From NCBI GenBank assembly GCA_002269645.1, contig NIVC01000419.1, forward strand, positions 62,001 through 126,000: DNA of 64,000 nt, given 5' to 3'. The notes beneath the pieces were generated by a model that worked only from the letters and a program-made list of their open reading frames with translations, was not told where the DNA came from and did not search any database. Shown here piece by piece: positions 3,366 through 64,000 of this stretch; positions within the stretch are counted from its first letter, which is position 1; each line of letters opens with the position of its first letter. The stretch comes from Macrostomum lignano. Lineage: Eukaryota. The position numbers were made by a program, and so were the translations under genes.

Positions 3366-6300
3366 CTACTCAGCCCGATGCTTCGCAAACAGGTCGCATT
3401 CGGAGGACGTCTCAGCTTCGCTCTCAGCCTCCACCTGATCAGTCAACCCAGCAGGTTGCATGGCTCGCCTCAGACTTCTCTGCGCCTCGTCCAGTTGCCT
3501 CTGCAGACTAGCGCAGTGGCCGCGGTCCCTGGCCTGAGCCAGTCTTAAGGTGGCATGGTCCGCCTGAAGCTCCGAGTGCTCCTGCCTGAGTTCGGTAAAC
3601 TGCCGCGACTCAGCCAGCAGTCTGTTGCGCAACTCTTCGGCCACTTCAATCACCGAATCCCGCTGACGGTTGCATTCGTGCAGCTGCTTGAGCAGTCCAT
3701 CGTTGACAGCTTCGATGTCCTCCGAGTATCGTTGCAAATCTGAATCGTAGTCTGGAGCCGGGGCATGTAGTCGGAGTCTAAATTGTTGAAAATAAAGTCC
3801 TTATCTTGTTGCCAATGCTTCTAAAACTGCTTTTCCTCCAGCTTCTTCTCGCTCTCCTCGGCATGAGACTCGTTTCTCTTATTCAGCTCATCAATGGTTT
3901 CCCTCAGCTGAGACTCCAAATCAGCCTTCTGCTCAATCAGCTTTCTGTGCTGCTCCAAAGCCTCTTGCTGTGCTTCGCAGTCCTGTCTCAGTCTCCCGAG
4001 CTCTTTCTTGCTCTCATCTGACTTGGCAAGAACTTGTCGAACAGTCTCGTCGCTATCTCTGCACTGCTTTCTGAGTTCATCCTCCAACTCCTTCATCTTG
4101 CGAAGCTCTTCAGTCAGCTTTGCAACTTCAGTCTCTGCGGCCTGAAGCATCTTGGCTTTGAAAAAGTTTTCATTACGCGCTGATTTAATTTCCATGTGCA
4201 TCTGACTGAAAATTGGAAATGAATGCACGGAGTGTGATGGAGTATGACAACTGAAAATTGATTAATCTACTTACTTTGCCATATTCTTGTCAATTTCAGC
4301 CTGGCTCTTCAATTCCCTGATCTCCTGCTGCAGTTTTTCTGTCTGCGAGTTGCCTTGAGCAGAGCTGAAAAGCCGAGAGGTCGGGAGTCATTGCTTGCGC
4401 TAACAAAAGCCGCTAATAAAAGAGTTTAAGACCCGTATGCATACCCGCTCTCCAGAGTTTTTATTTTCTCATTCAGTTAGTAAACTTTGTGTCGAGTCTC
4501 ATCAAAATCTTGGAGCACGCTGTCCAGCTCACTCTGCTTCTGCTCCAGCTGCTTTTGCAGCTTGGCCGCCTCATCAGCTTGCTGCATGCTGTTGGCTTCA
4601 GCACCACCGTTCTTGACTCCTGTCTGGCCTGGACTGGCATGCATGCCGCTATAAAATTCATTGGAAATAGTAATTAAAAACTTTTTTAAGCTTATTAGTT
4701 TGTTCAGATCTCCTGGCCAAGCTTTACAAAATCGGTAGGGAGAGATTCTGTGAGATGTCTGAAGGAAGGGAGTGGACACAGCAACCTGAAGGAGGTGTAA
4801 GGCGTAGCAAAGGATCTGGGTGATTAGAGGGTAATAGGACCACCGGAATGATCAGGGAAGGGACAGCAGAGGCCACTGGAAGGTTCAGGGAGGGGGCACT
4901 GAATGCCACCTAAAGGATCAGGGAGGGGGCACCAGATGCCACCTGAAGGATCAGGGAGGGGGCACCAGATGCCACCTGAAGGATCAGGGAGGGGGCACCA
5001 GATGCCACCTGAAGGATCAGGGAGGGGGCACCAGATGCCACCTGAAGGATCAGGGAGGGGGCACTGGATGCCACCTAAAGGATCAGGGAGGGTCACCAGA
5101 TGCCACCAGAAGGATCACGATGACTCAAAGGATTTCTATCCTAAGCTCACCGATTCTCGTAGTCCTTGACCTTCTCATTCAGCTGGTAGACTTTATGCCT
5201 GGTCTCGTCCAGATCTTCAGTCAAGCCGTCCAGCTCTTCCTGCTTTTTAGGCAGCTGAGTCTGCAGCTTGCTGACGTCTCCGTCGGCTCGAACGTTGGCG
5301 ACGTTGTCGCGACGGTCGCTTCTGGAATTTGGAAAAACAAATAAATTTGTTATAATGAAGCGACGGACCCGGATGTGAATATATGGAAAATAGCCAATGC
5401 TCTACCGTCTCTCGTAGTCCTTAATCTTCTCGTTGAGCTCGTAGACTTTGTGTCGAGTCTCGTCAAAATCTTCGAGCACGCTGTCCAGCTCCACCTGCTT
5501 CTCGGCCAGCAGCTTCTCCAGCCTGCCGGTGGCGGCGGCCCGCTGCTCCGCCCTGGAGATTGGCGGGTTTCGTCAGCTCCCGTAGAAACTCACTGACTAA
5601 TAAAGTCTAATGATTATAGTACGTTTGCACAATAAGGGAATCCACTTGTTGGAGAGCAGCAGGTTAATATCAAATGCATATGCGAAACAGGAAGTTTCCT
5701 TTTTTGCATTTTAAGACCAATGTCTCACCTTCTGGACTACCGAATTCCAAATCATGCAGGTTTTTCGTGCGTATGTGTGAACTGTGCAAGCAAAGTTCTG
5801 ACTAAATTTCAACTTTTCCTATTTCGCTCAGACGGGACGAAACCCATCTAACTTTGGAGTTTAAACTGGTTAACTGAAACGAGCTGTGTGAGTTTTTTCT
5901 GCCTTCGCAAACGCGCTGCAGCCCCTGCTACTCAATCCGCAAGAAGAGAAATTCAGCTTTGCACCAGTCAGCATAGCCGACGTTGTGACGCTCTGCAGAC
6001 AAATCACCGGGCTGGAAAACGCTGGGCGCAGACGAGGTGCCCATCGAAGCATTGCGCATCCCCTGTGTGGCTAGTAAGGTCTCCAAGTGATGAAACGCTT
6101 ACTAGCTCTTCGGTGAGGCGGCGCCTAACAAATGTACTACGGCACACATCGACGCTATTTTCTGAGAACGCGTTCCAGCCCCATTGCGGCACAGTGGTTT
6201 CAGATTTTAGTTTTTCGCCAAGACATTGAGAAGGCGGGAAATACGACAGTTGATCCTGATTGTTGTCTTCATAGATTTCAAAAGGCATTCAACTTGGTTG

Positions 6301-7074
6301 TCAGAGCCATGCTCCCAATGGTGGTACATTGCGTGCAGCGTGCACAACTTCCGCGAAGTAAAAAATCGTCTACCTCAGCAGTCTGGTTGCCTTGCCCCTC
6401 TATTCTGTGAAGGCGGTCCTGCAGTCTGACGCCCTACCTGATCGCCGGAGGACAGCGTTCCTCTGAGAGGTGGTCGAGACCGTCCTGCTTTACAGCATCG
6501 AGATCCGCTGGGGACAGACAAGTTGACGCGGCCCACAGCAGTTCGAAGATAATTTGAAAAGCTTCTAAGTACACATGAAATCCTCTTTCCCCTCTATCCC
6601 CAATTATCACCACTGGGGAAGCCCCTTGATACAAGATACATGCAGTCAAGGAAGGCTTTTGATTTTCTTTTTAGAGACTGAATTTTTAGCGTTGGTTCTG
6701 TTCTATGACTTATCGCTTCAAAATGAGCCCCAAGTTCGCACATATTTTGTGTCGTTCTACTTAAGTTGTCTAGGTCTGTCTTTCGACCTAAACTTCCAAA
6801 AATTCCAAACCATGAAAACTTTGTTCACTTACAACTTGAATGCTCAAACAGTGGTCTCGTAAATGTTTTCTCCACTCTGTAAATCAAACATCGCTTACCG
6901 ACTCTTGTACTCCTTGACCTTCTCGTTGAGCTGGTAGACCGTGTGTCGAGTCTCATCAAAGTCTTGAAGCAAACTGTCCAGGTCCATCTGCTTCTCCTCC
7001 AGCTGTTTACGCAGCTCCCGGATTGTTTTATCTTTTTGAGCATCAGAGTTCTCGCCTTGCATCGCTGGCCTCAT
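3366..7074 (-). CDS. Coiled-coil family gene C (7-exon model, one in-frame TAA; possibly a pseudogene)
   Basis: Exons 7074-6899, 5552-5406, 5321-5151, 4648-4445, 4364-4275, 4205-3828 and 3777-3366 join in frame via GT-AG phase-2 introns, giving about 525 aa. The last donor (GTTTTA, 50-nt intron) is weak. In-frame TAA at 4479-4477. The start is uncertain, and a degraded copy of gene A sequence lies at about 7160-7290. Confidence 0.6.
4878..5112. repeat. 33-bp minisatellite, about 7 copies, intronic
   Basis: Unit GAAGGATCAGGGAGGGGGCACCAGATGCCACCT in tandem without spacers. It explains the MPPEGSGRGHQ and CPLPDPSGGIW repeat ORFs. Confidence 0.95.
5880..6560 (+). mobile_element. Degenerate non-LTR retrotransposon reverse transcriptase fragment (RTE-like), in an intron of gene C
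   Basis: Pieces across frameshifts read HIDAI, NAFQPHCGTV, QILVFRQDIEKA, VVFIDFK/KAFNLV and AVLQSDAL/PYLI. These match the RT motifs QxGFR, FxDxxKAFD and QG in the expected order. Confidence 0.6.
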
Positions 7075-7756
7075 TCCTCGATTCCCATAATGCTTGAATT
7101 TCCTAGCGGGCTAAAATTATTAATGACAGTTTTTTGTTCACTACCTCGACACATACTCTTGGATGCTTTGAGCATTTTCGAATACCGCTTCATCTTTTGT
7201 AGTCATTCAGACTGGCCTGCAGCTGACTCACCTGACTACTCTGCTCCATCTTCTGCAGGTCAGACTCCGACAATGATGAGGCAATTTGAAAATCAAAAAC
7301 TGTTCAAATGAATTGCAACGATGTCTTTTTCATTTAACATGCGCTCGTAATGTTTGGGCTAACAACTCACGCTGGTTGTGCATATTCTTACGATAGTGCC
7401 ATTTAAAATTAATTAAAGTAAAATATAATACGAGCGTACCATGCACTTATCTATCTATTTTGTTGAACAAGGTACTAAAAGAGGCAGAGAACTGAAGAGA
7501 AACTATACATAGCCTACTTTGGATGTACAGCCAGGAGTGAGAGCTACGCTTGTACTCGAGTTTCTAGGCCTTTGCGCGTGTACTGATCGCCACCTTGCGA
7601 AACGTACGTTGCCTTTGCAAATTTATAAATGTACACTACAAATGTACACTTTCGATTGTACGGACGTATAAAGCGATTGTCTGCAATTTTTTTTAACTTA
7701 CGCTCATAAAAGCCAGATATAGAATCTAGCAGGCCAGAGTGCGCATGACTGCGGGC

Positions 7757-8529: not shown

Positions 8530-9465
8530 CTAGAGTCTAGTCTCAGCCAATTCCTTCTCTGCCTCGTCCAGTTGCTTCTGCAGACTGGCGCAGTGGCTGC
8601 AGTCTCTGGCCTGAGCCAGTCTCAGAGTGGCATTGTCGGCCTGCAGCTCCGCGTACTCCTGCCTGAGCTCGGTGAGCTGCCGCGACTCAGCCAGCAGTCT
8701 GTTGCGCAACTCTTCGGCCACTTCAATCACCGAGTCCCGCTGACGGTTGCTCTCCTGCAGTCTTCGGTGCAGCCTGTCGTTGACAGCTTCAATGCTTTCT
8801 GAGTACCGCTTTAAATCCGTGGCGTACGAGAGCTGTGAAGCCTCGACTTGTCTCGTTTGAACTTCGGGCTTCGTCTTCCTGCAAGAAGTGTCACCTGTGA
8901 AAGAGGCACTCTCGAAAAGAAAACTAGAAATTTAAATTTAAATTACTCACTGTATCGTTCTTGTACACATTGAGTATCTCATTGAGCTCTTTGACTTTGT
9001 TTCGAGATTCTTTTAAGTCCTTAAGCAGTTTGTCTAACTCAGCTTGCTTCTCGTTCAGTTTCTTTAGTAGCATGGAATACTGTTGAGTCTCAATATCAAA
9101 CGCATTGTCATCAGGATCAGTTTGAACACAACAGTCATCAGTGTCAAGCCATGTCTGAAATAGATTTGATACAATAGTTCAAGTACTCATCATACTATGC
9201 TATATCTCAGATAAAATATGATCTATCGCAGCATATTTCAAACATTGACGCCTAGTTTACTTGAGCACAATTTTCTTGACATAATGGCTCGAATTGGATC
9301 CCGGCATTACTGAGCTCGATCGGCAAATCTATTTCTTCAGTCTGAAATGGATTTGATACCCACAATAGAGTTTAAGTACTCTGTTGTGTTTCAGGTAAAA
9401 TATAAATCGATCATTTCAAACTTTTACACATAGTTTACCTGAGTAAAGGAATCACGGAAATCCAT
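8530..9465 (-). CDS. Coiled-coil family gene B (4 exons, about 226 aa)
   Basis: Exons 9465-9439 (MDFRDSFTQ), 9341-9261, 9154-8951/8947 and 8894-8530. Encodes KQAELDKLLKDLKESRNKV (paralogous to the gene C cassettes) and ESNRQRDSVIEVAEELRNRL (near-identical to the last exon of gene C). The last junction is in frame only with the weaker donor 4 nt downstream. Confidence 0.6.
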
Positions 9466-9915
9466 ACCGAACTGAGAGCCTGTGTCAGCAGTCCCTTGGG
9501 CAGCTCGCTTTTAAGAACTGGTGCTTTGAAATCCAGGCCTGCGAACTTTGTAGTTTTGAGAAGTCATAATGACTCTACGCTCGTAAAGCCTCAATTCTCG
9601 ATCTCCAACGGTTGCCACCCAGTCCACTGATCGCAAAATACATCTTTTTATGTAAGCAACGCTAAGCACACTCGTAACAAGGTACCAACTGCCGAAATAA
9701 AGAAAGTAGCGCTGAGAGCTATTTTTCCAGTTCGAGTACAGTCGAAAGCTAGCATTGTCTGCATTGAGTACTCATTTTGAGCTTATTTTCCAACTTCTAT
9801 CCTACTAGTAAATGCCAGATGTTCAAACCTTCTGCAAGTGCCGTAGCCTCTATAGTGAATTGATATAAGCTATTCCTCTAGTATCCAGGAGGACGCTGTG
9901 TTGCTTTTTACATCT

Positions 9916-9931
9916 ACTACTACTACTACTG

Positions 9932-10029
<98 letters not shown>
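9916..10029. repeat. (CTA)n microsatellite, about 38 units
   Basis: Direct reading; one CTG interruption. Confidence 0.97.
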
Positions 10030-10407: not shown

Positions 10408-12637
10408 TCAGGTTCGTCTTTGAGCCTTCAGAAGCTCCTGCTTCACTGATTGGTATTTGGCTTTGAGCTTCTCCATCTCGAGTCTGGTCTCTTCCAGTTT
10501 CTTATTGGCCAAGTCTGCAGTCTCCGCAGCCTGTGCCAGGCCTCTCTTGGCTTCGTCAAGGCGTCGGTTGAGGCTGGCGATCTCGGAGGCGTCACTGACC
10601 TGAGCCAGTCTCAGCGTCGCGTCTCTGCACTGCAGCTCCGAGTTTTCCTGCCTCAGGCTGGCCAACTTCGTCTCCAACTTCGCCACCCGTCGCGCCTCCA
10701 ATATGAACTTTTCTCGAATCTCCTCGGCCACTTGGCTGACGGCGCTTATCTGCTTTTTATGCCCCTCGATTTCCTTGTAGAGGTCGCAGTTGGCTGCGTC
10801 AACTTGATGAGAGCAGCGCTGCAAGTTCTCGGAGTATTCGCTTGACTGTTGCAGCTGGGACCTCGCCTCCACCAGCTCCTTGGCTATCGAGCTGGCTTTC
10901 TTGCGGAGTTGTACGCTGAAATCAAAATTGAATCTTGTGAAATATTGGAAAAATTGATTACACCTGCCCTAATAGGCTATTGCGCGGCGCATCTGAAGGC
11001 TGCGTACGGCTGTTCAGTCCAAGAACAACGAGGGTAGCCACACAAACCCCCTGACCTTTCAGTCGTGAGTCAGACGCTCTAACCACTGGGCTACAACCCC
11101 CTTATATATCTAAGTGGTTATGTAGGGATTGTTATAAAGCCAACCTGTCAAGTAGAACATCGCTTTGTGACAGAAAACAAAAGCTGTCAATGCTGGCTGG
11201 TTGGCTTTGAGCCTCCCTGCTCGTTTCCGCTCCTTGACCAGCCCTTGCGCCACTGGAGCCTAAGCTAATGCGCTCGACAAGCTTAAGCGTCTCGGCAGAG
11301 GAGTCGGTCATCGTGCCAGCATCGTTGCTTCTGAAGTTATCGGTTGAGAAGCTACTCAAACCAAACTGCTTAACCAACTCAAACATCTCGGCCTTCTCTG
11401 CCTCGTGCTTCTCGCTGAGCTCCTGCAGTTCCCGCCTGGCTTCCTCGGTCAGCCTCTCCTGCTCTCGGATTTTCTCCTCAAACTCCTTCCTCATCGCTTC
11501 AATAGCGCTCGAGTGCTCAGCAACAAGTCTGTCAACCTCTGCTCGACATCTCTCCCGCTCTGAGGTCAGCGCCCGCTCATTCTCAGCTTGAGCAGCCTGC
11601 AAGTTGCCTTCATTTTCCTTCTTTGCACCTGTCAGCTCCAGGTGTAGCGCTTTGACCTCAGCAGCATGATTGGTCTGCAGCTCAGCCAACTCCTGTTGCC
11701 ACTTGTCTCGCTCAGCCTCCACCGCTGCGCTTCGTTCTTCATCAAACTTGGCCTGCAGCTTCTGAGTCTCAGCTGCCAGCGTCTCATCTCTGCTGCGCTG
11801 CAGGTCGGCCTTCTCAGACTCCAGGCGCTCCTTGGTGTTGGTCAGCAGGTTGTACTGGTTCTTCAGTTTCTGGTAGTCTTCGCTGGTCTGCTGCCACTCC
11901 TCCTCTCGGGTGCGCAGCCTCGCCAACTCGGCCTTCATCTGCTCACTGCTGGCTAGCAGAGTCTCGCACTGCTCAGTCTTTTCTCCCAGCTCAGCATCCT
12001 TGTCCTCCAGCTTCTTCTTCATCTCGGCTTGCCGTTCCCGCATCAGGTTGCGAATCTGCTCGATACTTCCGCTGTTGTCTCTCAGGCTGTCGTGCAGGCT
12101 GGCCTGCTGCTGGCTCACCTGGCTGATCTGCTGGGCCATCTTCTGCAGCTCAGACTCCGATGATGATGAGTCTAGGCCTCCTTTAGGCTGATTGGGTACA
12201 CTTAGTCGGTTATTCTCTCCTTCTTGTGTAGCCTTGAGTCTTTTAAGCTCTTCTCTGGCTTCAACAAGCGCCGAATCCTGATCTCGAATTTTGTCCTCGA
12301 ACTGCTTTTGCGTTGCCTCCATTTCTTGCTCCCATTTCGCTCGTTCTGCTGCAACTGCCGCAGCCAGTTCTTCATCAAATTTGGCTTGAAGCTTCTCCGT
12401 AGCCTCCACCATGGCTTGATCCTTGACTTTCTGCAGATCTGCACTCTCCAGTCCATTCCTTCTCTGCCTTGGAAGCGACTGAGAACGATATGGCTGCATG
12501 CTCTCCGCTTCCTTTAGCCGAATTTCCAGCTGCGACACTTTAAACTTGAGCTTTCGACTTTTTTCCCTTAATTTCTCGCACTCTTTAGTCTTTTCTTCAA
12601 GCGACTGCCTGTACAGTTCGTTGTTATCGTCCGCCAT
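10408..12637 (-). CDS. Coiled-coil family gene A (2 coding exons, about 666 aa)
   Basis: Exon 12637-11145 ends GACAG|GTTGGC (phase 2). The acceptor tttcag|C at 10915 continues in frame (SVQLRKKASSIAKELVEARSQL...) to TGA at 10410-10408. E/K/Q/L-rich heptad protein that shares DATLRLAQ...LDEA with genes B and C. Confidence 0.8.
10961..11100 (-). mobile_element. tRNA-derived SINE, copy with large internal deletion, in the gene A intron
   Basis: The minus strand reads GGGGTTGTAGCCCAGTGGTTAGAGCGTCTGACTCACG, then jumps to the tail CTTGGACTGAACAGCCGTACGCAGCC shared with the copies at 56058 and 59898. B box and CORE are absent. Confidence 0.75.
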
Positions 12638-14685
12638 TTGAAGTACTTAACACTGGTCCGGGTTTGATGTTCTTGAAAATTCAGCAAAAGCAATTGTAAT
12701 TGTCTTAAATTCTTGTCTGCGTTGGCTCTGAGCTATGATACTGCACAAGCTTCATAGTTATAAGGCTATTTTCAACTGTACTGGGCAAGACTGTACAACC
12801 TATGTAAACGTATTGTCAGCCACCTTATCTTAGAGGGTTAAGGAGTTGACAAAATCATGCACACTGCTGTGCAGCCATTTTGCTTTTTATTTTAGCCTTG
12901 ACGAATTGCTCACAAAAAACAGCGAGGGTTGAAACTGTGGGCCCAGGCATAACTAGACAATTTGTTGAAACGAAGAACGAAAATGCTAAAATTATATTTC
13001 CAAATCCGTAGCAGTGAATAAGTATTGTACAGAGACAAAGTTATTCACTAAAGATAATTCTTTTTTTTCACTTGCCAAGCTGCTAGCATCGGAAGGCTGT
13101 AATTTCTGTAAACCTGCTGTGAGTTTGAGTAGCAGAAATCAGCAGTTAGCATTGGAAGGCTGGAAGTATCACAACCCCTGGTTACATATGGGACCCTTCT
13201 CGCACTGTTAGTAGTTTTTTTACCCAAGCATTTCGTCGGTCACATTCACAATAGATCCCCTGTTGAGAAGTCCTTGGGTTGGTGCAGCAGACTCTCGATG
13301 AACACCCAAGCAGAGTCCTATCTTCGGATAAAGGCAACCTCGATCCGTGGTCCCTTTCAGCGGCCCGGCGGCACCTTAGCTTGTCGGATAGGTTGGTATA
13401 GAGACTTGCCCTCAGGCAATGTTGCGTCAAAGTTGCTTTCATGAATTCTTTCATCTGCTTCCACAACGTCATGAACAGATTGGCAAGTTCAATAGCGTCG
13501 AGTCGCTTTAGTTCTTCTTGAAGTTTAGGTGGTGATGTAGTATTGCCGTCCTCTTTGCCAAGGTTGTCCTCAACTAACGATAGAAAATCCGTCGTTTCGA
13601 CGTCGTGGTTTTTCCCCGCGTTAATACGTCGTTTTGACATCGTATTTATGTCTTTTCGATGTCGTATGTATGTCGTTTCGACATTGATGGAACGTCGTTT
13701 TTATATCATATGTACGTCGCAATGTCGTATCGATGTCGTATTCATTTGTATGTATAGGTTCTGCATGCCGATGTCATTAAGTAGATTAAGGGATTTGCGC
13801 TGTATATAGTTAGTGGGGCTAGCAAATAGCAATAAAAGTGCCGATCTAAAAAGCAGGAACTTAAGGGTTCATAGTAGATAATTTATTGCGCTCTATTTCA
13901 TCAATGTTGCTGCTGGTGAAGCTTTTCAATTCTATATCCATATCTGCATGCATTTCAATTTCGTAAGCTTGAAAACACGGCATCGTCGAAAATTCCTCGG
14001 GCTTGACAAATAAAAAAGGTATAATCGATAAAAAATAAGTTGCGTTGAGTCTACGTCGTTCTAAAGCGTTTCATGAATACGACCGCAAAATTGGTCTTTT
14101 AATTAGGCATGAAAGTTTGCATCAAATTATCACCATTTTCTCAGGTTCACTGACGACCTATTCTCGCAGATTTGGTAATGCGCACACCATTAGCAATACC
14201 ATACAGCTGCGATCTCCGTTGGAGGGAGGCTGCTGTTACCATAGAAACATGGATTGGTTTCATTGGGCCAGCGGGGTAGACAACAGGATAAGCGAATTCC
14301 AGGAAGAGTGCCAATTTATAAAATTAATACATGTATAGAAGCGCGAAGTACTTAAGTTATCTCGTACTGCGGTCTGAGCCAGTTTATTTGCTAATGGTCT
14401 AACACTTAGTAGGAGCAAGACTCATCAACATCAAATAAAGTTTCAAAACTCATTCTCAAATTGATGCCGATGGGGCAGTAAATCGCCAAAACTGACAGGT
14501 ATTGCATACATGCTTTTCGGCTATATAACTCAGAAATTTAGTCGAATATTTCGACATAGTACCTACTTCAAACACGTTGGTGTTAGAAACAGAAAAACTA
14601 TTATGGGCTACAAGCTGCGGTAAGTCAAACCTGCATATTTCTGCGAGTTCATGCAAACAAAAATAAATTGACTCTCCACATTTTA

Positions 14686-15015
14686 GAGTGGCATTGCTCT
14701 ATGCACTGCTGCAGCTGCTTGTTCCTCATGGAACTGCTCAGGACGACTGTTCGAACGAGGTTTCTTTCAAACCAATCAATGGATTTTTCTGCATCAACCC
14801 TGAGTTTGTGCAGACCTTCGGCATGGCTACCGATAAGCTCTCTTGCTCGCTGATGTGCAGCCGCAAACGGTGCTGTCAAGCGTCACGGTGTGAACGCCAC
14901 CGAGATGAGCCACATGGAGACGATCTACAGCAAATAAAGCGCTGGATTCACCTTGTGGCAACCAGCCGGCTGGCAGCACCGAGAAACGAGGCGGCTGGTA
15001 CTGAGTCGGTCGGTT
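14686..15015 (+). pseudogene. Pseudogene of the PAN/Apple + C-type lectin gene (about 250-bp internal deletion, stops)
   Basis: Hydrophobic leader, then GFFCINPEF...CSLMCSRKRCCQA, joined directly to VNATEMSHMETIYSK* and QPAGSTEKRGGWY*VG. Collinear with 18837-19580 (GYLCIRSDF...CATLCSRNPRCQA; VDASEMSHVDSIY; QPAGSPEPAGGWYWVG). Confidence 0.8.
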
Positions 15016-15067
15016 CGATGAGCTTGGGGGTGTTGGCCGTACATTGTTTAACTCTCTGACCCTAAAG

Positions 15068-15460
15068 TGTACAATGCCTGCCCCGTCACTCTGCAGCCAA
15101 TCAGCTTGCACGCTTCTTGCTTATCAGGCGCAACTCCACCCCACGCAAATATTGATTTCTAAATATATATTGGCGCTCAAAGCCGCGCAGTGGCCAAGCC
15201 TTTTCTTACCCCTAAAACAAATCTACATTGGCATCGCTAGCAGGAATGTCTGTGCCTCTACAACTGCCCCCACCTGAGCCTTTCGATACTCAGAAAGAGC
15301 CACACAACCTCTCAGCACGGTGGGCAGAATGGGCCAACCGATTCAAGTGCTTTGTGACTGCAAGCGGCATGACAGATTCAAGTCAACAACGAGAGATTCT
15401 ACTTTACGTCGGCGGCAAACAGGTGGCTGAAGCGGACAAAACTTGGCCAGATACGAGCTA
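15068..15460 (+). mobile_element. Gypsy LTR retrotransposon 5' remnant (candidate LTR, PBS, gag start)
   Basis: TGTACA...CTACA (15068-15227) is followed by PBS TGGCATCGCTAGCAGGA (15229-15245), whose layout fits a tRNA 3' end with a GCAGG T-stem (Ser-like; inference). Then gag N-terminus LPPPEPFD...RWAEWANRFKCFVTASG...REILLYVGG. The LTR start cannot be confirmed without a second LTR. Confidence 0.75.
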
Positions 15461-52540: not shown

Positions 52541-53825
52541 ATGATTGAATCACTGGTGAGCCAGTTGACCCAGTCGAATGACCTGATGAAATCTCAGTGA
52601 GTTAAATTTTATTTATATACCTTCATTTTCTAGTGATTTCTTTTCTATTATGACTCATTCAACTCTTTAGACTCGAGCAGCTGCGGAAGGAGTGTACAAA
52701 GCTGCAATCTGATTCAAGGTAAGTGAGATAGTTGCTATCACTACTGAACTTTTCTCTGCGACCTTAAAGCCGAATTGAATAGCTTTTTAACTTCTTAGAA
52801 ATTCGATTTTCAGTCTAAGAGCGCACACAAATGACACCCAGCAAAAGTTGGAGGAGATATTCGAATTCGAACGGAGACTCAGGCTCAAGGACATGCAACT
52901 GGAAGAGCAGTCTCGCACACTGCTGACTCTAGAAGCTCGGATATCCTCATTGGAAGCCGAGATTGAGAAGCAGAAGCAGAATTCTCGAAGCCTGAGTCAG
53001 CAGCGAGATGAAGCATTGGAGCTGGCAGAGCAGCTGCGACAGCGTCTGGACATGAATGACGGCAACGCAAATGGCGGTTCAGTGGATCCTGGGAGCAATG
53101 CTTTAGTATCGCAGAGCACTTCCGATGATGAAACCAGAGAAGTTGAAAGCCTCAGACAGCAGCTGCTCGAGTCCAATAAGAAGCGCGATGACATCATCAA
53201 AGTGGCCGAGCAGATGCGTCAGAGGCTTGAAGAAGAGTTGGGCAAAACACAGAATGCAAATATCGAGCTGCAGGAGCTGAGGCAGCGCAATGCTCAGCTT
53301 GATCAACTGAGACAGCAGTTAGAACAAGCAAACAGCAAGTTGTAGGACTCTGAGAAGTTTGCCGACGATTTACAAAGCTACTCTGACGGAGTTGATAGAG
53401 AACTTGAAAACGTGAGGCAACAGTTCACAGAGTGCAGCGAAAAGCGCGATGACCTCATCAAAGTGGCCGAGCAGATGCGTCAGAGGCTTGAAGAAGAGTT
53501 GGGCAAATCGGCGACTGCTCATACCGAGCTGGAGCAGTTGAAGCTTGAGCACGCAAAGCTGCGCAATGACTACTCAGGTATGGAGCGGACAATGACCGAA
53601 ATGCTGACTAGAGAGCACGAGTTGAACACGCAGCTGGCAGAGGCTCAGGGGAAACTGAGACAGGCTGAGGAAGCAATCGGATGGTTCAAGCAAGAGCTGC
53701 CTCGAAAAGATGGCGAAATCGCGAATCTGACTGATGAGGTTCACAAGCTGAGAGAGAGATCCAACACCCTGCTTGAGAACCTGGCGGCCCAGGAGCAGCT
53801 CAATAATTACCGGTCCGGAAACTAA
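52541..53825 (+). CDS. Coiled-coil family gene D (3 exons; in-frame TAG at 53343-53345)
   Basis: Exons 52541-52596, 52671-52718 and 52814-53825, phase-2 introns. The frame continues past TAG for about 160 codons. Internal duplication of KRDD(I/L)IKVAEQMRQRLEEELGK. The start is uncertain. Confidence 0.65.
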
Positions 53826-54295: not shown

Positions 54296-54636
54296 CAGGA
54301 CAGTGTCCCTAGGAAACTGCCCCTAAGACACTGCCCCTAGGACACTGCCCCTAGGACACTGCCCCTAGGACACTGCCCCTAGGACACTGCCCCTAGGACA
54401 CTGCCCCTAGGACACTGCCCCTAGGACACTGCCCCTAGGACACTGCCCCTAGGACACTGCCCCTAGGACACTGCCCCTAGGACACTGCCCCTAGGACACT
54501 GTTCCTAGGACACTGCCCCTAGGACACTGCCCCTAGGACACTGCCCCTAGGACACTGCCCCTAGGACACTGCCCCTAGGACACTGCCCCTAGAACACTGC
54601 CCCTAGGACACTGCCCCTAGAACACTGCCCCTAGGA
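54296..54636. repeat. 14-bp minisatellite (GACACTGCCCCTAG), about 24 copies
   Basis: Direct reading; the palindrome CCTAGG recurs at unit junctions. Confidence 0.95.
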
Positions 54637-55234: not shown

Positions 55235-58200
55235 ATGAGCCATAACAGCAGCGATTCCCAATCTGACATCCTTGAATCATTAAGTTTGCAGCTGAAAGAG
55301 TTAAACAGTTCGAGTTTGCAACTATTCGATGCAAGGTAAGTAGCTTTCAATCCAATTCATAAAAATCGGTTACGACCGTAGTAAATGTATCAATAACATG
55401 ATGTAACAATATAAGTTATAGAAATATACACAATATTATTTAAATGCAAGCATTAATGGACAAGCCGTGTACCTCGCGGTTTAGGCTACTGGTTTTATAT
55501 TAAGGATTTTAAGTGGAGTTTACTGGTTTGAGATTTTGGTAGTTCGCTGCCACCAGGTTCCTGCTGTTCCCTAATTCTAGCTTTAGGCTTAAAGAACTCA
55601 GTCAGGACACCAATAAAGTTAGTTAAAACAAGTTTACTAAAAGAAGTAATTAAATGTTACGGTACAAAAGGTTGGTCTTCTTTTACAGTAACTCCCTATT
55701 TCCCTATGTGCTCTGGGCAAGACCCTTAATTAGTTTTAGAGGCAAGACTCCTCTGTTCAAGCCTAATTTATATCCCTTCTTTTACTTCCCCTTCTTACAC
55801 TTCCTTTCGTGAATTTTCTAAGTTAAATGTCCGAGGACGGGAGGAGATGCTTTCCCAAGAGCCCAACTGCTATGTAGTTCTAAAGGAATCCCAAAACTAG
55901 CGATTTTCCCCTACTCTAATTATTTCCCCGGGCTGAAGCTACTGATAGTAGGCAAAAAGCATATTTGAACCCACAATAATTCCCGTTCCTAAAATAATGC
56001 CCTACTACATTAATAAAAATCACTCTTCGAGTATTTAATCTCCTTTAGCATTGATTAGGGGGTTGTAGCCTTGTTTTTAGAGCGTCGAACTCGCGACTTG
56101 AAGGTAAGGGTTCGATTCCCTATCCCACTGAAACAATTTGTGCCAAGCTGTAAAATGGGTGCCAGCATTAGCTGGGGTAATTGAGGGTGTGTGTGGCGAC
56201 CCCCCCCCCCCCCAGTCATTGGCTGAAAAGCCGTACGCAGCCTTCAGATGCACCGCATGCACGATTGCTGCGGCTGAGCTGTCGGTTGCACATCTACTAT
56301 TATTAGCATTCGGCAATCTCTTAGCCATGACACATTCACCGAATCTTAAAAATTTCTTATTTATTAGTTCAATTTTAGTGAAAAACAGTTGATATAGTTT
56401 TTTTCCGAAAAATCAGTTGCCTATCCAGATAGACAGCCGCAAACAGTTGCCATTTTCGGATAAATGAGAGAAATTATACAGGGCTTCGTACTTACAGTAC
56501 TAGCTTAACAATTTCAAACCTTCCCGACATACAATGAGCAATTAAAAACATAAAATACTTGGTCTGGTAGTTTATAAAACTTGATTCACATCTGCATTAG
56601 CTTAATTTAAAAAAATATCAAGAAACGCAGTTTCTTGGAACTCAGTTTTCAAAAACAAAAATTTTCAGTGTTTCGACGTGTTTTATTGAGTTTCACTCAT
56701 TTCAGATTTCATATTTTAGAACCGAGCAGCCTGAGAACGAGCCGAAGCAGAAAATTTCCGATGCATTGAGCAACCTTGACTCATTTGAGTACGAGTAAGC
56801 TGCACTGGTTAACTTTTAACCCAGCGTCATCGCATTTTATCACCTATACTTCCACTTATTTTTCATTTTAGACAAAGACAAAAAAATCAGCATGCTCAGA
56901 ATTCCATGAGACAAGCAAGAGATGAAGGAAATGACACTGCAGTATCTGATTCGTTAAGGGAGCTTTCAGAGAAGCTCGAGAATCAACTTAAAATGAAAGA
57001 TTACCAGCTGGAGCAGCAAAGCCGCAAAATTCAAGATCTGCAATCAAGAATATCCTTTATGGAAGCTGAAGCTGAAAAGTTGCGACGCGATTCAACTGTT
57101 CAACGCGACGAGTCGATGCAGTTCACTAAGAAGCTTGGAAAGCGACTTAATATCGATGTGGGCAGCTTAGTCCCAACTGCCGAGCTGAGACCTAAAATGA
57201 ACCAGCCGAATCCACAGAGTTGTACCAAAGACAATCCTAGACAGATGCCGAAGGTGATGATGTCTGCTTGTATTTCCTCGCGATGTGAGGTGGAAAAATA
57301 TCCTGATGAGCCGATGTCCATCAACTTAGGGAAGATTGAAAGACGTAAGCAATTGACAAAATCCTTTCATTCTGAGCAACAGACTACACAACTGGCAGTT
57401 GATGGCAAGTTTCAAAAGGAAAAGCAGAAAGAACAAGTCGCTGATCTTGAAGCTAAAAACCTGAAACTACAAGCTGAAGTGACGCGATTGCAAGCGGAAA
57501 ATGATCGGTTAAAGACGTCGGAGACTCAAGTAACAGATCAGTCAACTGAATTCAAGAACGCTATTCAGAAAATAGAGTCCCTGGAAATGCAGCAGAAAGA
57601 ACACGCAGACGAACAAGAACGTCTATCAAAGCAGCTAGGTGAACTTGAAGCAAAAAATATTGGTCTAAAAGAAGAACTGCAACGACTACAAGAGAAAAAC
57701 AATCAGTTGAAGTCGTCCGAGGCTCATTTGACAGAGCTGAGCACTCAACAGCAGGAAGATATCCAGAATAGCGAGGCTTTGATCGAGCGACAGAAAGAAC
57801 AAATTGCTCGCGTTGAATCAAAAAATGTTGAAGAATTGAAGCGACTGCAAGAGGAGAACAATCAATTGAAAGTTTCTGAGACTCAGCTAAAAGAGCAGTG
57901 CACTAAGCTTCAAAGAGATATTCATGGTAGTAAGACTGTAATTGAGCAGCAGAAAGAACAGGTAGGTCAACTTGAAACCAAATACGTTGAGCTGCAAGAA
58001 GAACTGAAGCGACTGCAGAAGGACAACGATTTTTTAAAGTCATCAAAGACTCAAATGGAAGATCGGATCGCTGAATACAAGAAAGATATTCAAAGCAGCA
58101 ATACTCAGCTGGAGCAGCAGAAGGAACAAGTAGCTAATCTTAAAGAAAGAAACCTAAAACTACAAGCAGAACTGGATCAGTTGCACAATAATTACCATCA

Positions 58201-59762
58201 GTTAAAGTCATTGGAGGTCCAATTAAAAAAAGCAGTGTATCGAATACCAAAAAGCTGTTCAAGATGGCGAGTCTGTGGTGAAGCAACAGAAAGTAGATCA
58301 AGCCTCTGAGCACGAGTCTCTTATGAAACAGCTGGCTGAAGTTGAAGCAAAAAATCTCGCTCTTGGAAACGAATCAAAGCGAGTGTGTGAAGATAACGAT
58401 CGGTTGAAGTCCTCCGAGGCACAAGCAATGGAGCAGGTCTTTCAATGCAAAAAAGATGTTCAGAAAAGCGAGTCTGAAATGGATCAGCTGCAACAACAAA
58501 TCGCGGACCTTGCAGCAAAAAATCTGGCTCTTCAAGAACAGGTGAATCAGGCTAGTCTGAATAGTGATTCCTTGATGAAGCAGCAGGTAGATAAAATTGC
58601 TGACCTTGAGAATACAAACCTGGCGCTACAGACAGAGCTGAAGTCAATGCAGGAGGATAAAGATCGTTTATTATTAGCTGAGACTCAACTAAATCAGCAG
58701 ATAACTGAATATATGGAATCCACCAAGAACATCGAGACACTGATGGCGCAACAGAGTGAAAAAGTAGCTCAACTGGAATCAAAAAACCTTGAGCTACAAG
58801 AAGAGCTGAAGCAACTGCAGGAGGATATCGAGAGGTTAAAGTTGTCTGAGGCTCAACTGAAGGAGCAGTGCGCACCGCACAAGGAAGATATTCAAAATAG
58901 ACAGACTCAAATGGAACAGCAGAATAGTCAAGTTGCTAAACTTGAAGCCTCAGGTCTGGCTTTAAAAGAACATTTAAAACTACTGCAGGAGGATAACGAG
59001 AGGTTAATATTATCTGAGACACAACTGAAAGAGCAGATTACTGAATACATGGAAGCCATCCAGAACATTAAGACACTGATGGAGCAACAGAGTGGCGAAG
59101 TATCACACCTTGAATCAAAAAATCTTGAGCTACAAGTCGAATTGAAGCGACTCCAAGAGACAATTTCTGGGGCTCAGCTAAAAGAACAGTGCACTCAAAC
59201 CAAAGAGGCTACTCAGAATAGCATGTCAGAGATGGAGCAGAAGAAAGATCGAGTAAATGAACTAAAAGCTACAAATCTAGCGCTGCAAGCAGAACTCGAT
59301 AGATTACAGGAGGAAAACGATAGTTTGAAGTCGTGGGAGGCCCAACTGAAAAAGCAGTGCACCGAATGCAGGGAAGAAATTCAAAAGGAGCGCACCAAGT
59401 CCAGCAGCGCGCAACAGGAGCTGGCGAAGTTCAAAGAAATCTGTAGAACGCAGAGGACCTACATGGATCGGTACAAAAGCGAGCTGGAAAGTAGCGTCTC
59501 GATGACACGCGCTCGCGAAATGGAAAGCACCATTGCCGAATTGACCGATCGGCTAGGTCGGCATGCCGAAGAGTTCGACAGCAAACTGATGGCAGAGAAA
59601 CGAAAACAGGAGCAGCTTTATAAGAAATTTTGCGAGCAATCTGATCTCAGGTTGAAAGCGGCGCAACAGTTGATCAAACTGAATGACGAATTGGCTAGAG
59701 TACGGCAAGCAGCTGCTCAAGTCGGGGAGCTGAAGCAGTCAACACTTGAAAACGATGATTAA
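55235..59762 (+). CDS. Coiled-coil family gene E (3 exons, about 1020 aa if the +1 A at 58225-58231 is removed), about 12 x 56-aa repeats
   Basis: Exons 55235-55335, 56720-56794 and 56872-59762, phase-2 introns. The two track ORFs (56906-58309 and 58275-59762) join if A7 is read as A6, restoring LKKQCIEYQK as in sister repeats. Confidence 0.8.
55457..56009 (-). mobile_element. Solo LTR-like element in intron 1 of gene E
   Basis: The minus strand begins TGTAGTAGGGCATT and ends ...GTCCA, with 4-bp TSD TTAA (55453-55456, 56010-56013). Both ends are homologous to 24925-28107. Confidence 0.75.
56058..56262 (+). mobile_element. tRNA-derived SINE, partial CORE deletion
   Basis: tRNA-like head with B box GGTTCGATTCC, then GCTGTAAAATGGGTGCCAGC and the shared tail. 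About 45 bp of the CORE are missing relative to the 59898 copy. Confidence 0.8.
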
Positions 59763-59897
59763 TTAAAACGACTTAAATGAGAAGTGAATTTTGTTTTTAT
59801 TTTAACATTATAACAACAGCTAGTAGGTTTTTTAGAATAGTTACGAACAGTATCCCTGATGTATCCAGGCTAGGCAAGTATCTAATCTAATCAGGCA

Positions 59898-60142
59898 GGG
59901 GTTGTAGTCTAGTGGTCAGAGCGTCGGACACACGACTAAAAGGTCGGAGGTTCGATTCTCGATCCACTTGGAACAATTTGTGTCCTTGAGCAAGACACTC
60001 AACTCTGCATTGCTTCAGTTCACCCAGCTGTAAAATGGGTGCCAGCATTAGCCGGGGTAATTGAGGGTGTGTGTGGCGACCCCCCAGTCCTTGGACTGAA
60101 CAGCCGTACGCAGCCGTCAGATGCGCAGCGCAATAGCAGGTG
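59898..60142 (+). mobile_element. tRNA-derived CORE-type SINE, most complete copy
   Basis: A box TAGTCTAGTGG (59905-59915) and B box GGTTCGATTCT (59949-59959). TGTGTCCTTGAGCAAGACACTCAAC...CAGTT...CTGTAAAATGGG (59979-60039) resembles the MIR/CORE consensus as I recall it. Confidence 0.8.
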
Positions 60143-61421
60143 TGGTCAATATTCGTTTTTATCTATTCAAATGCGCCTCAATTAGCTTCGGTTTAAAATT
60201 GTAAAATTGCCCTTCTGTAGAAAAGACTCTTTTCGATGTGAAGACACGTAGCACCCAGCAACATATTTCGAAAAATGATTCGTTTTTGTGGAATTGTAAT
60301 CTGACTGTAATACAATTGCTCTCTTTGACATGCTATACATAGGTACTACTGTACACTGAGAATAAAAAGCATTCGATATGGTCCTAAAATAGAGAAGTAA
60401 TGAAGAATTAATTCAAGTGTAACAAAAACAATTATTCTGTGTACCATGTTGATCAATCAAGTGGATAATTCCATTCAAAATCAGCACCAAGTTTAGGTAG
60501 TTAACCAAAAAAACTTGTTTGCTATTTTCAAATTGATTCTCGTTTAACCGGAGAGCGAGAGAGATTCTTAAACGGCTGGTTTGGAATGAAATCTGTGAAA
60601 GTTCCAAAGTTGTGAAAGCTGGATTTTTATCAGTTTGATTTACTTATTGTCTATGGCCGAGAGCAGTTTTGTGGCAGTGGCTGCTACAGTACTACATGTA
60701 GTAATCAAAGCGTTTCATCCGTATATATACTAACTGGTTATGGTTAGGGTTCAATCATAAAATTATCGTCGGATCAACCATACGTAAAATATTAATGGGG
60801 GAATTGCTGAGATGCATGTACCTAGAATCATGAGGAGATCGCTGAAATGGCTCAGGGGGAATCGCTGGAATGTCAAGCTTTATAAAGGGGATTTTAGAGA
60901 TTTTAATGCTCATGGGGCATTGCTAAAATTGCTAAAACCAAAGCTCAAAGGGAATGCTGGAATCTTAGGCTAGATGGCTGGCTTTCAGATTTTTGCTTCT
61001 AACATCATTTTACTGAAGAGATTAACAATTGTGACTGCACAAGGTCAAAACCTACATGAGAACTTTTCCAGCATTTTATAATTTAGAAATGTTTTTAATT
61101 CTAGAGTTTAACGTTTAGCTCAGACAGGTCGAATGAAAAATTTGCAAATGTACTTGAGCAGCCTACAGTCTACAAGCGTATGGCCAACTTTCTTCATGCG
61201 CTGACAAACTCCAACAAGTGTCTAGGAAGTTTTTTGTGTCTGTCTGTGAAGCTCTGGGTGTTTGTGCAGGGCTTGTTTTAGTTTTCAATTGAGTTTATGG
61301 TTTTGGCACTCACCGGTCATTGCTATCTGATATTCAGCGCTTCTGCGCATTTTGAGCGTGGGTACTGCATGGCTTCAAGCTTCAAGAGGTTAAAGAAGCA
61401 GCCGTACAAGGAACTTCTGTT

Positions 61422-61918
61422 CAGGGCGTAGCCAGGAATTTTGATTGGGGGGCCGTGAGTTAGGGGGCGCCAGCTTCTTATAGGGGGGCGCCAGTTTCTT
61501 TTAGGGGGGGGGCGCCAGTTTCTTATAGGGGGGCGCCAGTTTCTTTTAGGGGGGGGCGCCAGTTTCTTATAGGGGGGGGCGCCAGTTTCTTATAGGGGGG
61601 GGGCGCCAGTTTCTTATAGGGGGGGGGCGCCAGTTTCTTTTAGGAGGGGCCGGGGCACCAGTTTCTTTTAGGGGGGGGGGCGCCAGTTTCTTATAGGGGG
61701 GGGGCGCCAGTTTCTTTTAGGGGGGGGCGCCAGTTTCTTTTAGGGGGGGGGCGCCAGTTTCTTTTAGGAGGGGCCGGGGCACCAGTTTCTTTTAGGGGGG
61801 GGGGCGCCAGTTTCTTATAGGGGGGGCGCCAGTTTCTTTTAGGGGGGGGGGCGCCAAGGCCAGAGTTGGTGATTGGGGGGGCATGGCCCCCCTTGCCCCC
61901 CCTCTGGCTACGCCCCTG
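61422..61918. mobile_element. hAT-like MITE with internal ~24-28-bp tandem repeats
   Basis: TIRs CAGGGCGTAGCCAG / CTGGCTACGCCCCTG with exact 8-bp TSD CTTCTGTT (61414-61421, 61919-61926). About 15 internal copies of GGGGGGCGCCAGTTTCTT(A/T)TAG. Confidence 0.9.
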
Positions 61919-62489
61919 CTTCTGTTAGACAGTATTCGATCGTATTATATAATACTAATTTGTCGTCAATAAATTGTGAAACAAAACGAGCTATGTAATG
62001 GATAACTTTATTGGGATTATTACTACTATTTACTAAAAACGGTGTGAGTCAATTGCTTAATACCGTGATATACTACTAAAAGCAGTAATAACGATCCTGC
62101 CAGTACTTTCAGTCTTCTATGCATCTCTGCATGTCTATCCAGAGCTTCAGTACCTTGAAATTTAGGAGTACATTAGTCAGGAAAGACAGGAGAGTATGAA
62201 GAATAGAATTATGGAAACCCATTTGAACGCAAAACTGAGCGCACTGAGCGCTCTTAGATGTACAAAAGAAGCGCCAGTTTAGATGTACATGTACTACAAT
62301 GCTGCGAACCCAAACCTCTCACCCATCTAGCATTGTAGCTGCAGTGTCCATGATAAATGCTTGGCGAATGAGCGGTGCAGAGCCCTTTTTAGTTAATCTT
62401 TTATAGAAAATTGAAGCATACCTAATGTCCAATGACAAATTTTCTGACTGCAGCATCTCAACATCCTTCTATAAGCTTGATAAATGCGA

Positions 62490-64000
62490 ATGGCTGCAGA
62501 AGTGACAGTTGAAAGCGAAGAAAAAACTGATTTGATCAAATCGTTAACCCAAATTATGGGCCAATCTAAGAGCCTTCAAAACTCTCAGTCAAGTTCTGTG
62601 TAAGTCGCTATATTTTGAATTGTTTGTTAAATTTTTTGTCTATTTGTCGACCTCTTTGATGAGTTAGCTTAATTAATAAACATTTATTTGTTTTCGTTTC
62701 TTTCCGTATCTTACTGCTCTTGTGTGTCTTGACGTCATGAATCTTGTTGTGGATTTTGTTATTATTTTCGTGGTTGTTTTTGAGTTTTTGTGATCTTAGT
62801 CGTTTTTTGTAGTCGTAGTTATTGTTTAACTGTTGTGAACTTGACGCATATTGCCAGTTTGATACTCGATTTTTAGAGAGCATGAAGGCGTAAACGAACC
62901 TAATCGGCAGTTGACACAACAACAATGTTCTGCTACGAGTATATCAAATTCATTGGAGTCATCCGAGGGCATGTAAGTTCTGCGTTCATTTACTGATCCA
63001 AACCGTATGCATATTAAAGATCAAAGAGATATTAACGACTTTTTAGACAGAAGCCAAAACAAGAAGAAAAAAGACATCATGAGGACTGTGTGGACGTTAG
63101 AACAGATGATACTCTTAGCGAAAGTCTACTCAACGAGCCAATAGAGGGAAAACAGAAAATGGAGAAGTTGGAACAGGAAAACTCCCTTTTAAACAAAAGA
63201 ATAAAGAGTATGGAAAGTGAAACGTTTCGCTGCGAAGCCCCTGTGAATGAATTGGAACAAAACAACCGTACAATTATGGCTGAAGAGCAGAACGAAGTTC
63301 AAGAGAAGCCGAAGTTGACGGATGCGCAGCTTGGTGATTCGAAGCTCTCAGAACTTCAAGAGCTTCGGGACCAGCGTCTTTCACAAGAAGATGATTCCTG
63401 CAAAGAATCCAATTCCACGAAAACCAGCATCCCGCAAGATGGAAACGAATCCGGTTTCCGTGAATTGCAGGCTCCAACGTCGTTATCTTTTAGTCAAGAA
63501 TCTGAGACACGCGTTAAGCCACAAAGTCCTCCCACGAACGTGTTCCATGATCGACTGACCAAAGCAATTTATTCTGACGAGCATCAGACTCAGCCCCCGG
63601 CAGATGACAGCAAGTCTCAGTTGAAGCAACTATCGCAAGAAAAAGCTGACCTTGAAGCAAGCAAACTGCAACTGCAGACAGAACTGGACCGGCTGCGAGA
63701 AGAGAACCACCAAATTAAATCTTGGCAAACGCAACGTAAAAAGCAATGCGACGAGTACAAGGAGGCTATTAAAAATCAGCGTACGGAACTGGAAAATAAG
63801 CAGCGAAGCCTAGAAGAATTCAAACAAATCTGTCAGAATCAGAAAATTCATTTAGCTGAGTACAAACGTCAAGCTGAGGAGGATCACTCTCTGATGCTGA
63901 ACATGAAGGGCACTATTGGCGAGTTGATTAAGCGGCTCGAACAGCACGCGGACGAGTTCGACAGCAAACTGATGGAGGAGAAGCGAAAACAGGAGCGTCT
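62490..64000 (+). CDS. Coiled-coil family gene F (runs off the window end)
   Basis: Exons 62490-62599, 62877-62972 and 63047->64000, phase-2 introns. The frame is open to the window end, so it is absent from the ORF track. C-terminal part TIGELIKRLEQHADEFDSKLMEEKRKQE is paralogous to gene E. Confidence 0.8.

Follow-up and report, generated by a model that had tools for sequence, protein, structure and literature searches.

A tandem cluster of module-sharing coiled-coil genes in Macrostomum lignano, probably a taxon-restricted superfamily

Gene content of the cluster

The subject of this work is a 64,000-nucleotide stretch of the genome of the flatworm Macrostomum lignano (assembly GCA_002269645.1, contig NIVC01000419.1, positions 62,001 to 126,000 of the forward strand; hereafter the window), in which 12 coiled-coil loci lie within about 60 kb. 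Loci A, B and C occupy the minus strand at 3.4-12.6 kb, and U1-U6, D, E+F and G the plus strand at 21.9-64 kb. A preliminary description, made from the letters of the sequence, had proposed 12 members in two opposed arrays about an island of transposable-element (TE) and lectin sequence, and the gene map confirms the count, the orientations and the island. The loci it named are likewise real, with a correction of naming: what it called 'E' is two open reading frames (ORFs) of a single frameshifted gene, here E+F, and what it called 'F' is here G. The guanine-cytosine content of the window is 38-51%, and its ORFs are sparse.

The window DNA is 96.7-98.5% identical to contig NIVC01001246.1 of the same assembly, and the 3' ORF of E+F (58227-59759) is 100% identical to a GenBank protein from that contig. 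The longest coiled-coil ORF (48633-50720, U6) has a single match among 5.8e9 proteins, the M. lignano protein P0001, which maps onto U3 plus U4 of the window at 92-96% identity; gene A is 97% and 99.4-100% identical to proteins from two further M. lignano contigs. Given these levels of DNA and protein identity to other contigs, we read the window as belonging to a set of several sister copies that this locus has in the neopolyploid genome of M. lignano, and as a third copy beside those on NIVC01001245.1 and NIVC01001246.1. The sister copies used for comparison are labelled L001, L002 and L003, and annotated M. lignano proteins P0001-P0015. In the lists below, m1 to m5 are short sequence modules treated in the next section.

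The minus-strand array comprises the following genes and exons:

10411-12637, minus strand: gene A (Mlig010584-type, about 666 amino acids), intact; exon 1 from 12637 to about 11147, exon 2 from about 10917 to 10411
8533-9178, minus strand: locus B, an m5 exon (8927-9178) and an m3 exon (8533-8931) and nothing else
3369-7110, minus strand: gene C (Mlig034174-type), multi-exon, supported by the annotated protein P0004 (586 amino acids)
6898-7110, 5405-5572, 5150-5401 and 4480-4851, minus strand: the four m5 (KQxELD) exons of C
3824-4261, minus strand: m4 exon of C
3369-3800, minus strand: m3 exon of C

Gene A contains a 501-amino-acid ORF, an intron that carries a transfer RNA (tRNA)-derived short interspersed element (SINE), and a second exon holding an m3-type domain; this two-exon model is backed by the annotated proteins P0012 and P0015, which are 97-100% identical to it. 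Locus B, which was not called as a gene in L002, has an m3 exon 74% identical to that of C, and B probably arose when the 3' end of C was duplicated in part. Gene C itself is interrupted in the window by a nonsense codon at about 4477-4479 (GAA>TAA) where L002 reads GAA, and it is without the extra m5 exon that P0004 has between m4 and m3. Outside the window, hybrid paralogs (Mlig012931 and Mlig031107) lie at 2882-6231 of L003 and on contigs of 164 kb and 619 kb. They run in order from a unique N-terminus through an A-type middle (96% identical to A), a serine-rich acidic region and five KQxELD repeats to the start of an m4 domain, and since they combine A-type and C-type parts, the family extends beyond the window.

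The U subfamily opens the plus-strand array:

21894-23319, plus strand: U1, exon 1 with a degenerate m1; main exon with two internal deletions, cut before m4; out-of-frame downstream remnants
30229-31781, plus strand: U2, exon 1 (m1) and main exon, cut before m4, with a hydrophobic tail; downstream remnants out of frame
33600-35069, plus strand: U3, about 170 codons deleted internally; m4 present; C-terminal part (34857-35069) in another frame
37008-37412, between U3 and U4: 51-bp tandem repeat, 7.9 copies, 97% matches
38479-40887, plus strand: U4, full length (about 714 amino acids) but for a frameshifted A7 run near 39826
42373-43698, plus strand: U5, exon 1 (m1) and main exon with two deletions, cut before m4
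48314-50717, plus strand: U6, the sole intact U gene (about 715 amino acids); exon 1 48314-48439, main exon about 48690-50717; m1 and m4

We took U6 as the reference for the subfamily. The junction between exons 1 and 2 of the U genes is backed by the annotated P0001, which comes from another assembly and stays in frame across the A7 site of U4. P0001 is the older model A0A1I8G9K9, in which the 51-bp repeat is translated as coding sequence and joins U3 to U4; it is probably an annotation chimera. Exon 1 of U3 was not found in the window, and a short coiled-coil-like ORF (33016-33288, plus strand, ...LEQVEQSNRSLEEQLANRAQ...) lies just 5' of U3, where that exon would be expected. The ORFs of U2 (about 31720-31781, SFMLLILFILVILWLRKP*) and U1 (about 23170-23260, SFMLFTCVLVLASSLFDVF...) have strongly hydrophobic ends that resemble tail anchors, and these may be either frameshift by-products or a genuine membrane-anchored short isoform.

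Indels within the U genes are shared in a pattern that does not follow a tree. The nearest paralog likewise switches along the gene, with U1 and U5 94% identical in one 200-bp block and U2 and U5 93% identical in another, while U3, U4 and U6 are 93-97% identical around m4; because the nearest paralog changes along the gene, gene conversion or unequal crossing-over among the U loci is indicated.

The remaining plus-strand genes follow:

52541-53822, plus strand: gene D, exon 1 (m1) 52541-52597; main exon with m2 and m3
55235-59759, plus strand: gene E+F (Mlig010330-type), exon 1 (m1) 55235-55336, exon 2 about 56721-56795, exon 3 from about 56861
62484-64000, plus strand: gene G, exons 62484-62600, 62878-62973 and from 63042 onward, continuing past the end of the window

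In the window, D carries a tandem duplication of about 261 bp that gives it a second m3, together with an in-frame stop at 53343-53345, whereas the L001 copy is a single open 320-amino-acid ORF without that duplication. From its N- to its C-terminus, E+F consists of m2, about ten repeats of about 66 amino acids and a domain with m4. In the window the gene falls into ORFs 56813-58306 and 58227-59759 through a +1 frameshift at about 58228, within an A7 run; the same sequence is found in L001 but not in the copy encoding P0011, which is intact (1062 amino acids, three exons). The A7-run frameshifts of U4 and E+F could be assembly or long-read homopolymer errors. Gene G has the m1-like DLIKSLTQI in its 62484-62600 exon and an m4 domain of a HADE variant in its last exon. 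Its intact version (P0003, L001) has 423 amino acids and three exons, and the window copy is probably intact as well.

Shared modules and homology between classes

The preliminary description had picked out five short modules that recur among these genes in different combinations. When each was sought by regular expression in the six-frame translation ([LI][EDK]SL..Q[LI] in the case of m1), all five were present, with 7, 2, 4, 6 and 3 matches for m1 to m5, far above the numbers expected by chance in shuffled DNA (0.08 for m1, 0.0 for m2-m5) or in residue-shuffled coiled-coil ORFs (0.04 or less). Module m1 lies in exon 1 of U2, U4, U5, U6, D and E, and its seventh match, at 58202, is an internal repeat of E. 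It had been ascribed to all of U1-U6 and to D, E and the gene now called G; D, E and G do carry it, as do four of the U genes, but U1 has only a degenerate version (LDSIEILTILL) and U3 yielded no exon 1. Module m2 is matched in D and E, where it had been proposed. The assignment of m3 to B, C and D was right as far as it went, with two matches in D, but gene A also belongs through its m3 domain. The proposed memberships of the last two modules hold, with m4 found in U3, U4, U6, E+F, G (the HADE variant) and C (one residue off), and m5 in B and several exons of C; C and G each stand one residue off the m3/m4 consensus.

Similarity between the classes is not confined to the motifs, since BLASTP with composition correction links them at 1e-10 to 1e-20 over 60-170 residues around the motifs. 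We also compared Smith-Waterman scores with those of 400 shuffles that preserve the heptad register, F here denoting the 3' ORF of E+F. The resulting z values were 8.1 for F-U, 8.8 for F-C, 12.8 for D-E, 11.0 for D-C and 20.5 for A-C (in the m3 domain), the m4 exon of C against the N-terminal part of U gave z=6.0, and with values ranging overall from 3 to 20 most cross-class pairs scored above all 400 shuffles. Between-gene scores thus exceed those of heptad-preserving shuffles; scores no better than between random coiled-coil proteins were what the preliminary description had named as refuting it. Moreover, the m1 exon is in every case examined (U, D and E+F) a short first coding exon that begins with ATG and ends in a phase-2 GTGAGT/GTAAGT donor, and because its position and intron phase match across the classes, common ancestry is independently supported.

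These comparisons show that the members are homologous as a network, not end to end. Genes A, B, C and D have in common a domain of about 130 amino acids around m3, genes D and E+F the m2 region at the N-terminus, genes C, E+F, G and U the pre-m4/m4 C-terminal domain, and genes U, D, E+F and G the m1 exon. In a MAFFT alignment, m5 (KQxELD..L.D..ETRHKV) lines up with the segment after m4 (KQEQLYKKFCEQSDLRLKA), a correspondence that is unproven. We also considered whether m3 corresponds to the segment after m4 and rejected this, hhalign of alignments A3 and A4 giving a probability of 1.7%.

The shared modules could in principle be a chance likeness between unrelated coiled coils, which generally share heptads rich in E, K, Q and L, and the truncated G indeed scores only z 1.2 against U6. 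Full-length G (P0003), however, matches the family profile described below at E=6e-17 against 1.84e9 proteins, most cross-class pairs beat every heptad-preserving shuffle with z of 5-20, the motifs are essentially absent from residue-shuffled coiled-coil ORFs, and the classes have the exon-1 position and intron phase in common. Profile search, heptad shuffles and motif shuffles together refute the chance explanation, to which we assign practically no probability.

Protein form and the search for relatives

The composition of the encoded proteins is typical of coiled coils, with E, Q, K and L together at about 40-49%, proline at about 1-3% and cysteine at 1-2%. AlphaFold2 predicted the U6 main exon as four long helices, each about 105-165 residues (19-173, 186-348, 370-529 and 554-660), with short breaks between them and no globular domain, at a mean predicted local distance difference test score of 69.5 and a predicted template modelling score of 0.26, confidence being best around m4. 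On these predictions, the proteins are almost purely alpha-helical rods. In the start regions read (MSSSCANHG..., MSHNSSD..., MADDNNE...), no N-terminal signal-peptide-like sequence was seen by eye, no predictor having been run.

Relatives outside M. lignano were sought in several ways. A profile built from sequences of U, F, G and C was run by exhaustive hmmsearch against 1.84e9 representative proteins (a set that draws on UniRef) and retrieved only four M. lignano proteins (P0001-P0004) at E<=1e-6; the next matches, with E from 1e-4 to 1e-3, were bacterial coiled coils of no relation. With gene A as query only M. lignano proteins were found, and with U6 a phmmer-type search yielded P0001 alone. 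Among Pfam models, none scored above its cutoff on the ORFs or on the annotated models, sequence searches of the PDB gave generic coiled coils only (NRBF2 at 0.014; the MYH7 rod at E=0.0013, 21.5 bits), and Foldseek of the U6 model against the PDB gave no match (vimentin E=8.3, TM 0.08). The preliminary description had called the family unrecognised and apparently lineage-restricted, and with no Pfam or PDB match and only M. lignano proteins among 1.84e9 this stands. In operational terms, the genes fall into the class of a taxon-restricted tandem gene family: they are tandem paralogs with significant mutual homology and no outside homolog at the sensitivity used.

The genes might instead be divergent members of a conserved metazoan coiled-coil family, as their automatic annotation implies: the UniRef name of P0001 (the U3-U4 fusion) is CCDC150 and that of P0014 (an A-B-C fusion) is bicaudal D. 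A liprin-alpha-like origin is a further candidate, since PF25526 (LIP-1) matches the N-terminus of E at 30.7 bits. CCDC150 is, like P0001/A0A1I8G9K9, long, poorly characterised and mostly coiled coil, but no sequence relationship was detected, the exhaustive profile search retrieved no CCDC150, and the bearer of the name is a read-through chimera of two genes and a translated 51-bp repeat. For bicaudal D (PF09730), the A ORF gave no match at E<=1, and P0012, P0013 and P0014 gave none at E<=0.001. As CCDC150 and bicaudal D disagree for genes that are demonstrably paralogous, the automatic names look like spurious coiled-coil matches, and because profile, Pfam, PDB and Foldseek searches gave nothing above threshold, both labels are unsupported. 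The liprin-alpha resemblance lies between the m2 region of E (LENQLKMKDYQLEQQSRKIQDLQ) and coiled-coil 2 of that family, but it falls short of the gathering threshold of 34.1 bits, D has no match, and the match is gone in full-length P0011 (E<=0.001). SAM domains gave no Pfam match in any member, and the AlphaFold2 model of U6 has helices only. With no non-Macrostomum protein below E=1e-4 among the 1.84e9 representatives, membership in one of these families is quite improbable.

Structural families offer a closer analogy. Intermediate-filament and keratin clusters, and macif1, reportedly a flatworm intermediate-filament protein of the adhesive organs of M. lignano, resemble the present genes in that the alpha-helical rods are segmented, the paralogs lie in tandem and undergo gene conversion, and the role is probably structural. 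They differ in that the best score on the filament domain PF00038 is 12.6 bits (in D) against a cutoff of 40, in the insignificant Foldseek value for vimentin, and in organisation, since here modules are shuffled among members whereas intermediate filaments keep a fixed head-rod-tail plan. Nothing scored above the Pfam cutoff for Myosin_tail_1 or Tropomyosin either (Tropomyosin 21.8 vs 38.6 bits for P0011). A multi-copy M. lignano family without a Pfam match has been described before, Mlig-sperm1, which is found in free-living flatworms only (Grudniewska et al., bioRxiv 10.1101/167346; Sci Rep 2018). Its proteins are described as having one beta sheet and several helices, 48% disordered positions and planarian homologs (Grudniewska et al., bioRxiv 10.1101/167346). 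By that published description the two families are set apart, as the present one is an all-helical rod for which no non-Macrostomum homolog was found.

Selection, genomic setting and interpretation

Most members are disrupted in the window. A and U6 are intact, and G probably so; C has its nonsense substitution, D an internal duplication with a stop, and B is a two-exon fragment; U1, U2 and U5 are cut before m4, U3 has a large deletion and a frameshifted tail, and U4 and E+F have +1/-1 frameshifts in A7 runs. Among U paralogs, synonymous divergence (dS) is 0.16-0.28 and the ratio of non-synonymous to synonymous divergence (dN/dS) is 0.40-0.87, lowest for the full-length pair U4/U6. Against sister copies, dN/dS is 0.36 for U6 (20.5 synonymous and 28.5 non-synonymous differences from the L001 copy), 0.27-0.36 for A (L002 copy), 0.63 for G, and about 1 for D1 and for the m4 exon of C. 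The sole value above 1 is that of E, on 1 synonymous versus 13 non-synonymous differences. Neither among U paralogs nor between window and sister copies did dN/dS exceed 1 on a meaningful number of sites, and positive selection is not shown. As dN/dS is below 1 wherever it can be reliably measured, we take relaxed or purifying selection plus decay to be at work, with the intact genes A and U6 under purifying selection and others relaxed. Calling the family 'fast-evolving', as the preliminary description did, is fair relative to the neighbouring CIMIP3 gene, whose dN/dS against its sister copy is 0.10; its suggested check of dN/dS among U1-U6 returns values that are elevated but not above 1. 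Its picture of recent tandem arrays with mosaics, pseudogenes and TE load agrees with the low dS, the neighbour switching, the disrupted copies, and the TEs and SINEs.

The disruptions raise the possibility that most of the cluster consists of decaying duplicates that now do little, redundancy after recent polyploidisation having let copies gather stops, frameshifts and deletions. Besides the broken copies, dN/dS values of 0.8-1.0 for several members and the lack of GenBank annotation for the U genes are consistent with this. U6, however, retains a 665-codon ORF in two copies at its low ratio, A has dN/dS as low as 0.27, intact versions of D (320 amino acids), E+F (1062), C (586) and G (423) exist on sister contigs, and the two A7-run frameshifts are possibly homopolymer errors of long reads. 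We therefore treat decay of the cluster as a whole as a real but doubtful alternative.

The preliminary description had favoured a reproductive or genetic-conflict family, for example gamete-specific filaments, evolving fast under positive selection. The tandem, mosaic, TE-rich layout would suit such a family, as would the differences in copy and exon number between copies of the locus and the elevation of dN/dS relative to CIMIP3. The ratios nevertheless do not exceed 1 on a meaningful number of sites, pseudogenisation accounts for the high values of truncated copies, the start regions read by eye show no signal peptide, nothing else seen marks these as secreted reproductive proteins, and no expression link to these genes was found; we consider this explanation unlikely.

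The other features of the window and its flanks are as follows:

1516-2256, minus strand: CIMIP3 (ciliary microtubule inner protein 3) homolog, PF22581 at 59.6 bits, with a long P/Q/T-rich N-terminus ahead; left flank of the cluster
13000-21600: central island between the arrays, with fragments of a long terminal repeat (LTR) retroelement, a PAN/C-type-lectin ORF and a microsatellite
about 15400-17010, minus strand: LTR-retroelement gag, protease and reverse transcriptase fragments, with a gag zinc knuckle (CGFCGQQHERRKCPA), a weak aspartyl-protease match (PF13975, 14.5 bits) and a reverse transcriptase-like stretch
18798-19577, plus strand: PAN and C-type-lectin-like ORF, a weak PAN match (E=0.0013) followed by a WIGL...GEP motif
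20742-21571: (TAG)n microsatellite, 830 bp, 277 units, at the boundary of the central island
10840-11110 (intron of A), 56050-56420 (intron 1 of E+F) and 59880-60190 (downstream of F): three copies of a tRNA-derived SINE-like element
L001 16688-18936, minus strand: DRC1/NYD-SP28 axonemal protein gene, right flank, about 3-5 kb past the right end of the window

Genes of the cilium or flagellum thus lie on both flanks of the cluster, which may be coincidence. The head of the SINE-like element (GGGGGTTGTAGCCTAGTGGTTAGAGCG...GGTTCGATTC) has A- and B-box-like motifs, and although it resembles a tRNA, an ARAGORN scan of the window called no tRNA. The strand opposite the PAN/lectin ORF holds a 280-amino-acid ORF that is probably spurious. 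Between U1 and U2, at 28655-29431 (plus strand), motifs picked out by eye (DESW..., ...SPDFNFCKRF), without Pfam confirmation, suggest a mariner/Tc1-like transposase remnant. Further perfect (TAG)n/(CTA)n microsatellites occur at 9914-10029 (39 units) and 47681-47806 (42 units), and minisatellites at 4840-5117 (33-bp x 8.5, inside the C region), 54297-54636 (14-bp x 24, between D and E) and 61463-61856 (24-bp x 16, between F and G).

We conclude, at a probability of roughly 60%, that the genes belong to a taxon-restricted superfamily whose proteins are rod-shaped coiled coils, almost wholly alpha-helical, and whose members sit in one tandem cluster in M. lignano. The cluster evolves by tandem duplication, by the doubling of individual exons (KQxELD in C, the 66-amino-acid repeats in E+F), by internal deletions, by gene conversion between paralogs and by segmental re-use of the kind seen in the Mlig031107/Mlig012931 hybrid, with its A-type middle and C-type repeats. 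The proteins may act in the cytoskeleton or in scaffolds, as rods that assemble into homo- or hetero-oligomers; pairing may start, or partners dock, at the conserved modules, in which case members with a module in common could co-assemble. Single copies would be free to decay through the redundancy that the recent genome doubling gave.

Several points weigh against this conclusion. The profile used for hmmsearch has 277 positions, about 25 of them in m4, and other Macrostomum species are apparently not in the databases searched. When alignment A5 of the C-terminal domain was used in a word-indexed search, the outcome was empty and lacked even the M. lignano proteins that score 1e-55 to 1e-81 with the same hidden Markov model; as these were its positive control, the empty outcome says nothing about relatives. 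Coiled coils diverge fast, and the lack of relatives may reflect lost detectable similarity rather than true novelty. The U subfamily is without any gene model in the GenBank Mlig_3_7 annotation, and its expression is for that reason unproven. In the M. lignano full texts and supplements searched for a link to expression, localisation or interaction, Mlig010330, Mlig034174, Mlig010584, Mlig031107 and Mlig012931 and their UniProt and GenBank accessions were absent. Oligomerisation through the shared modules, lastly, is something that we only infer.

A more specific idea, which is speculative and to which we give a low probability, is that the superfamily is a Macrostomum-specific kit of co-assembling rods, its modules serving as interchangeable pairing or docking units, that builds a lineage-specific structure and is tuned by rapid exon shuffling and copy turnover. 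The structure may be the sperm bristles or shaft, the stylet, or the cytoskeleton of the epidermis or adhesive organs.

Taxon-restricted coiled-coil families are common in animal genomes, and the cluster by itself has no bearing on a long-standing open question, such expansions being familiar already. In M. lignano, where transgenesis and RNA interference are available, it provides a defined set of unannotated or mis-annotated genes that can be corrected and tested, since the U subfamily is missing from GenBank and older models are read-through chimeras with the misleading names CCDC150 and bicaudal D. The neopolyploid genome moreover lets sister copies of the whole cluster decay differently. 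If its intact members are expressed, the cluster would be a compact natural case of new structural proteins being built from a few coiled-coil modules, with exon duplication, segmental re-use and gene conversion all on show.

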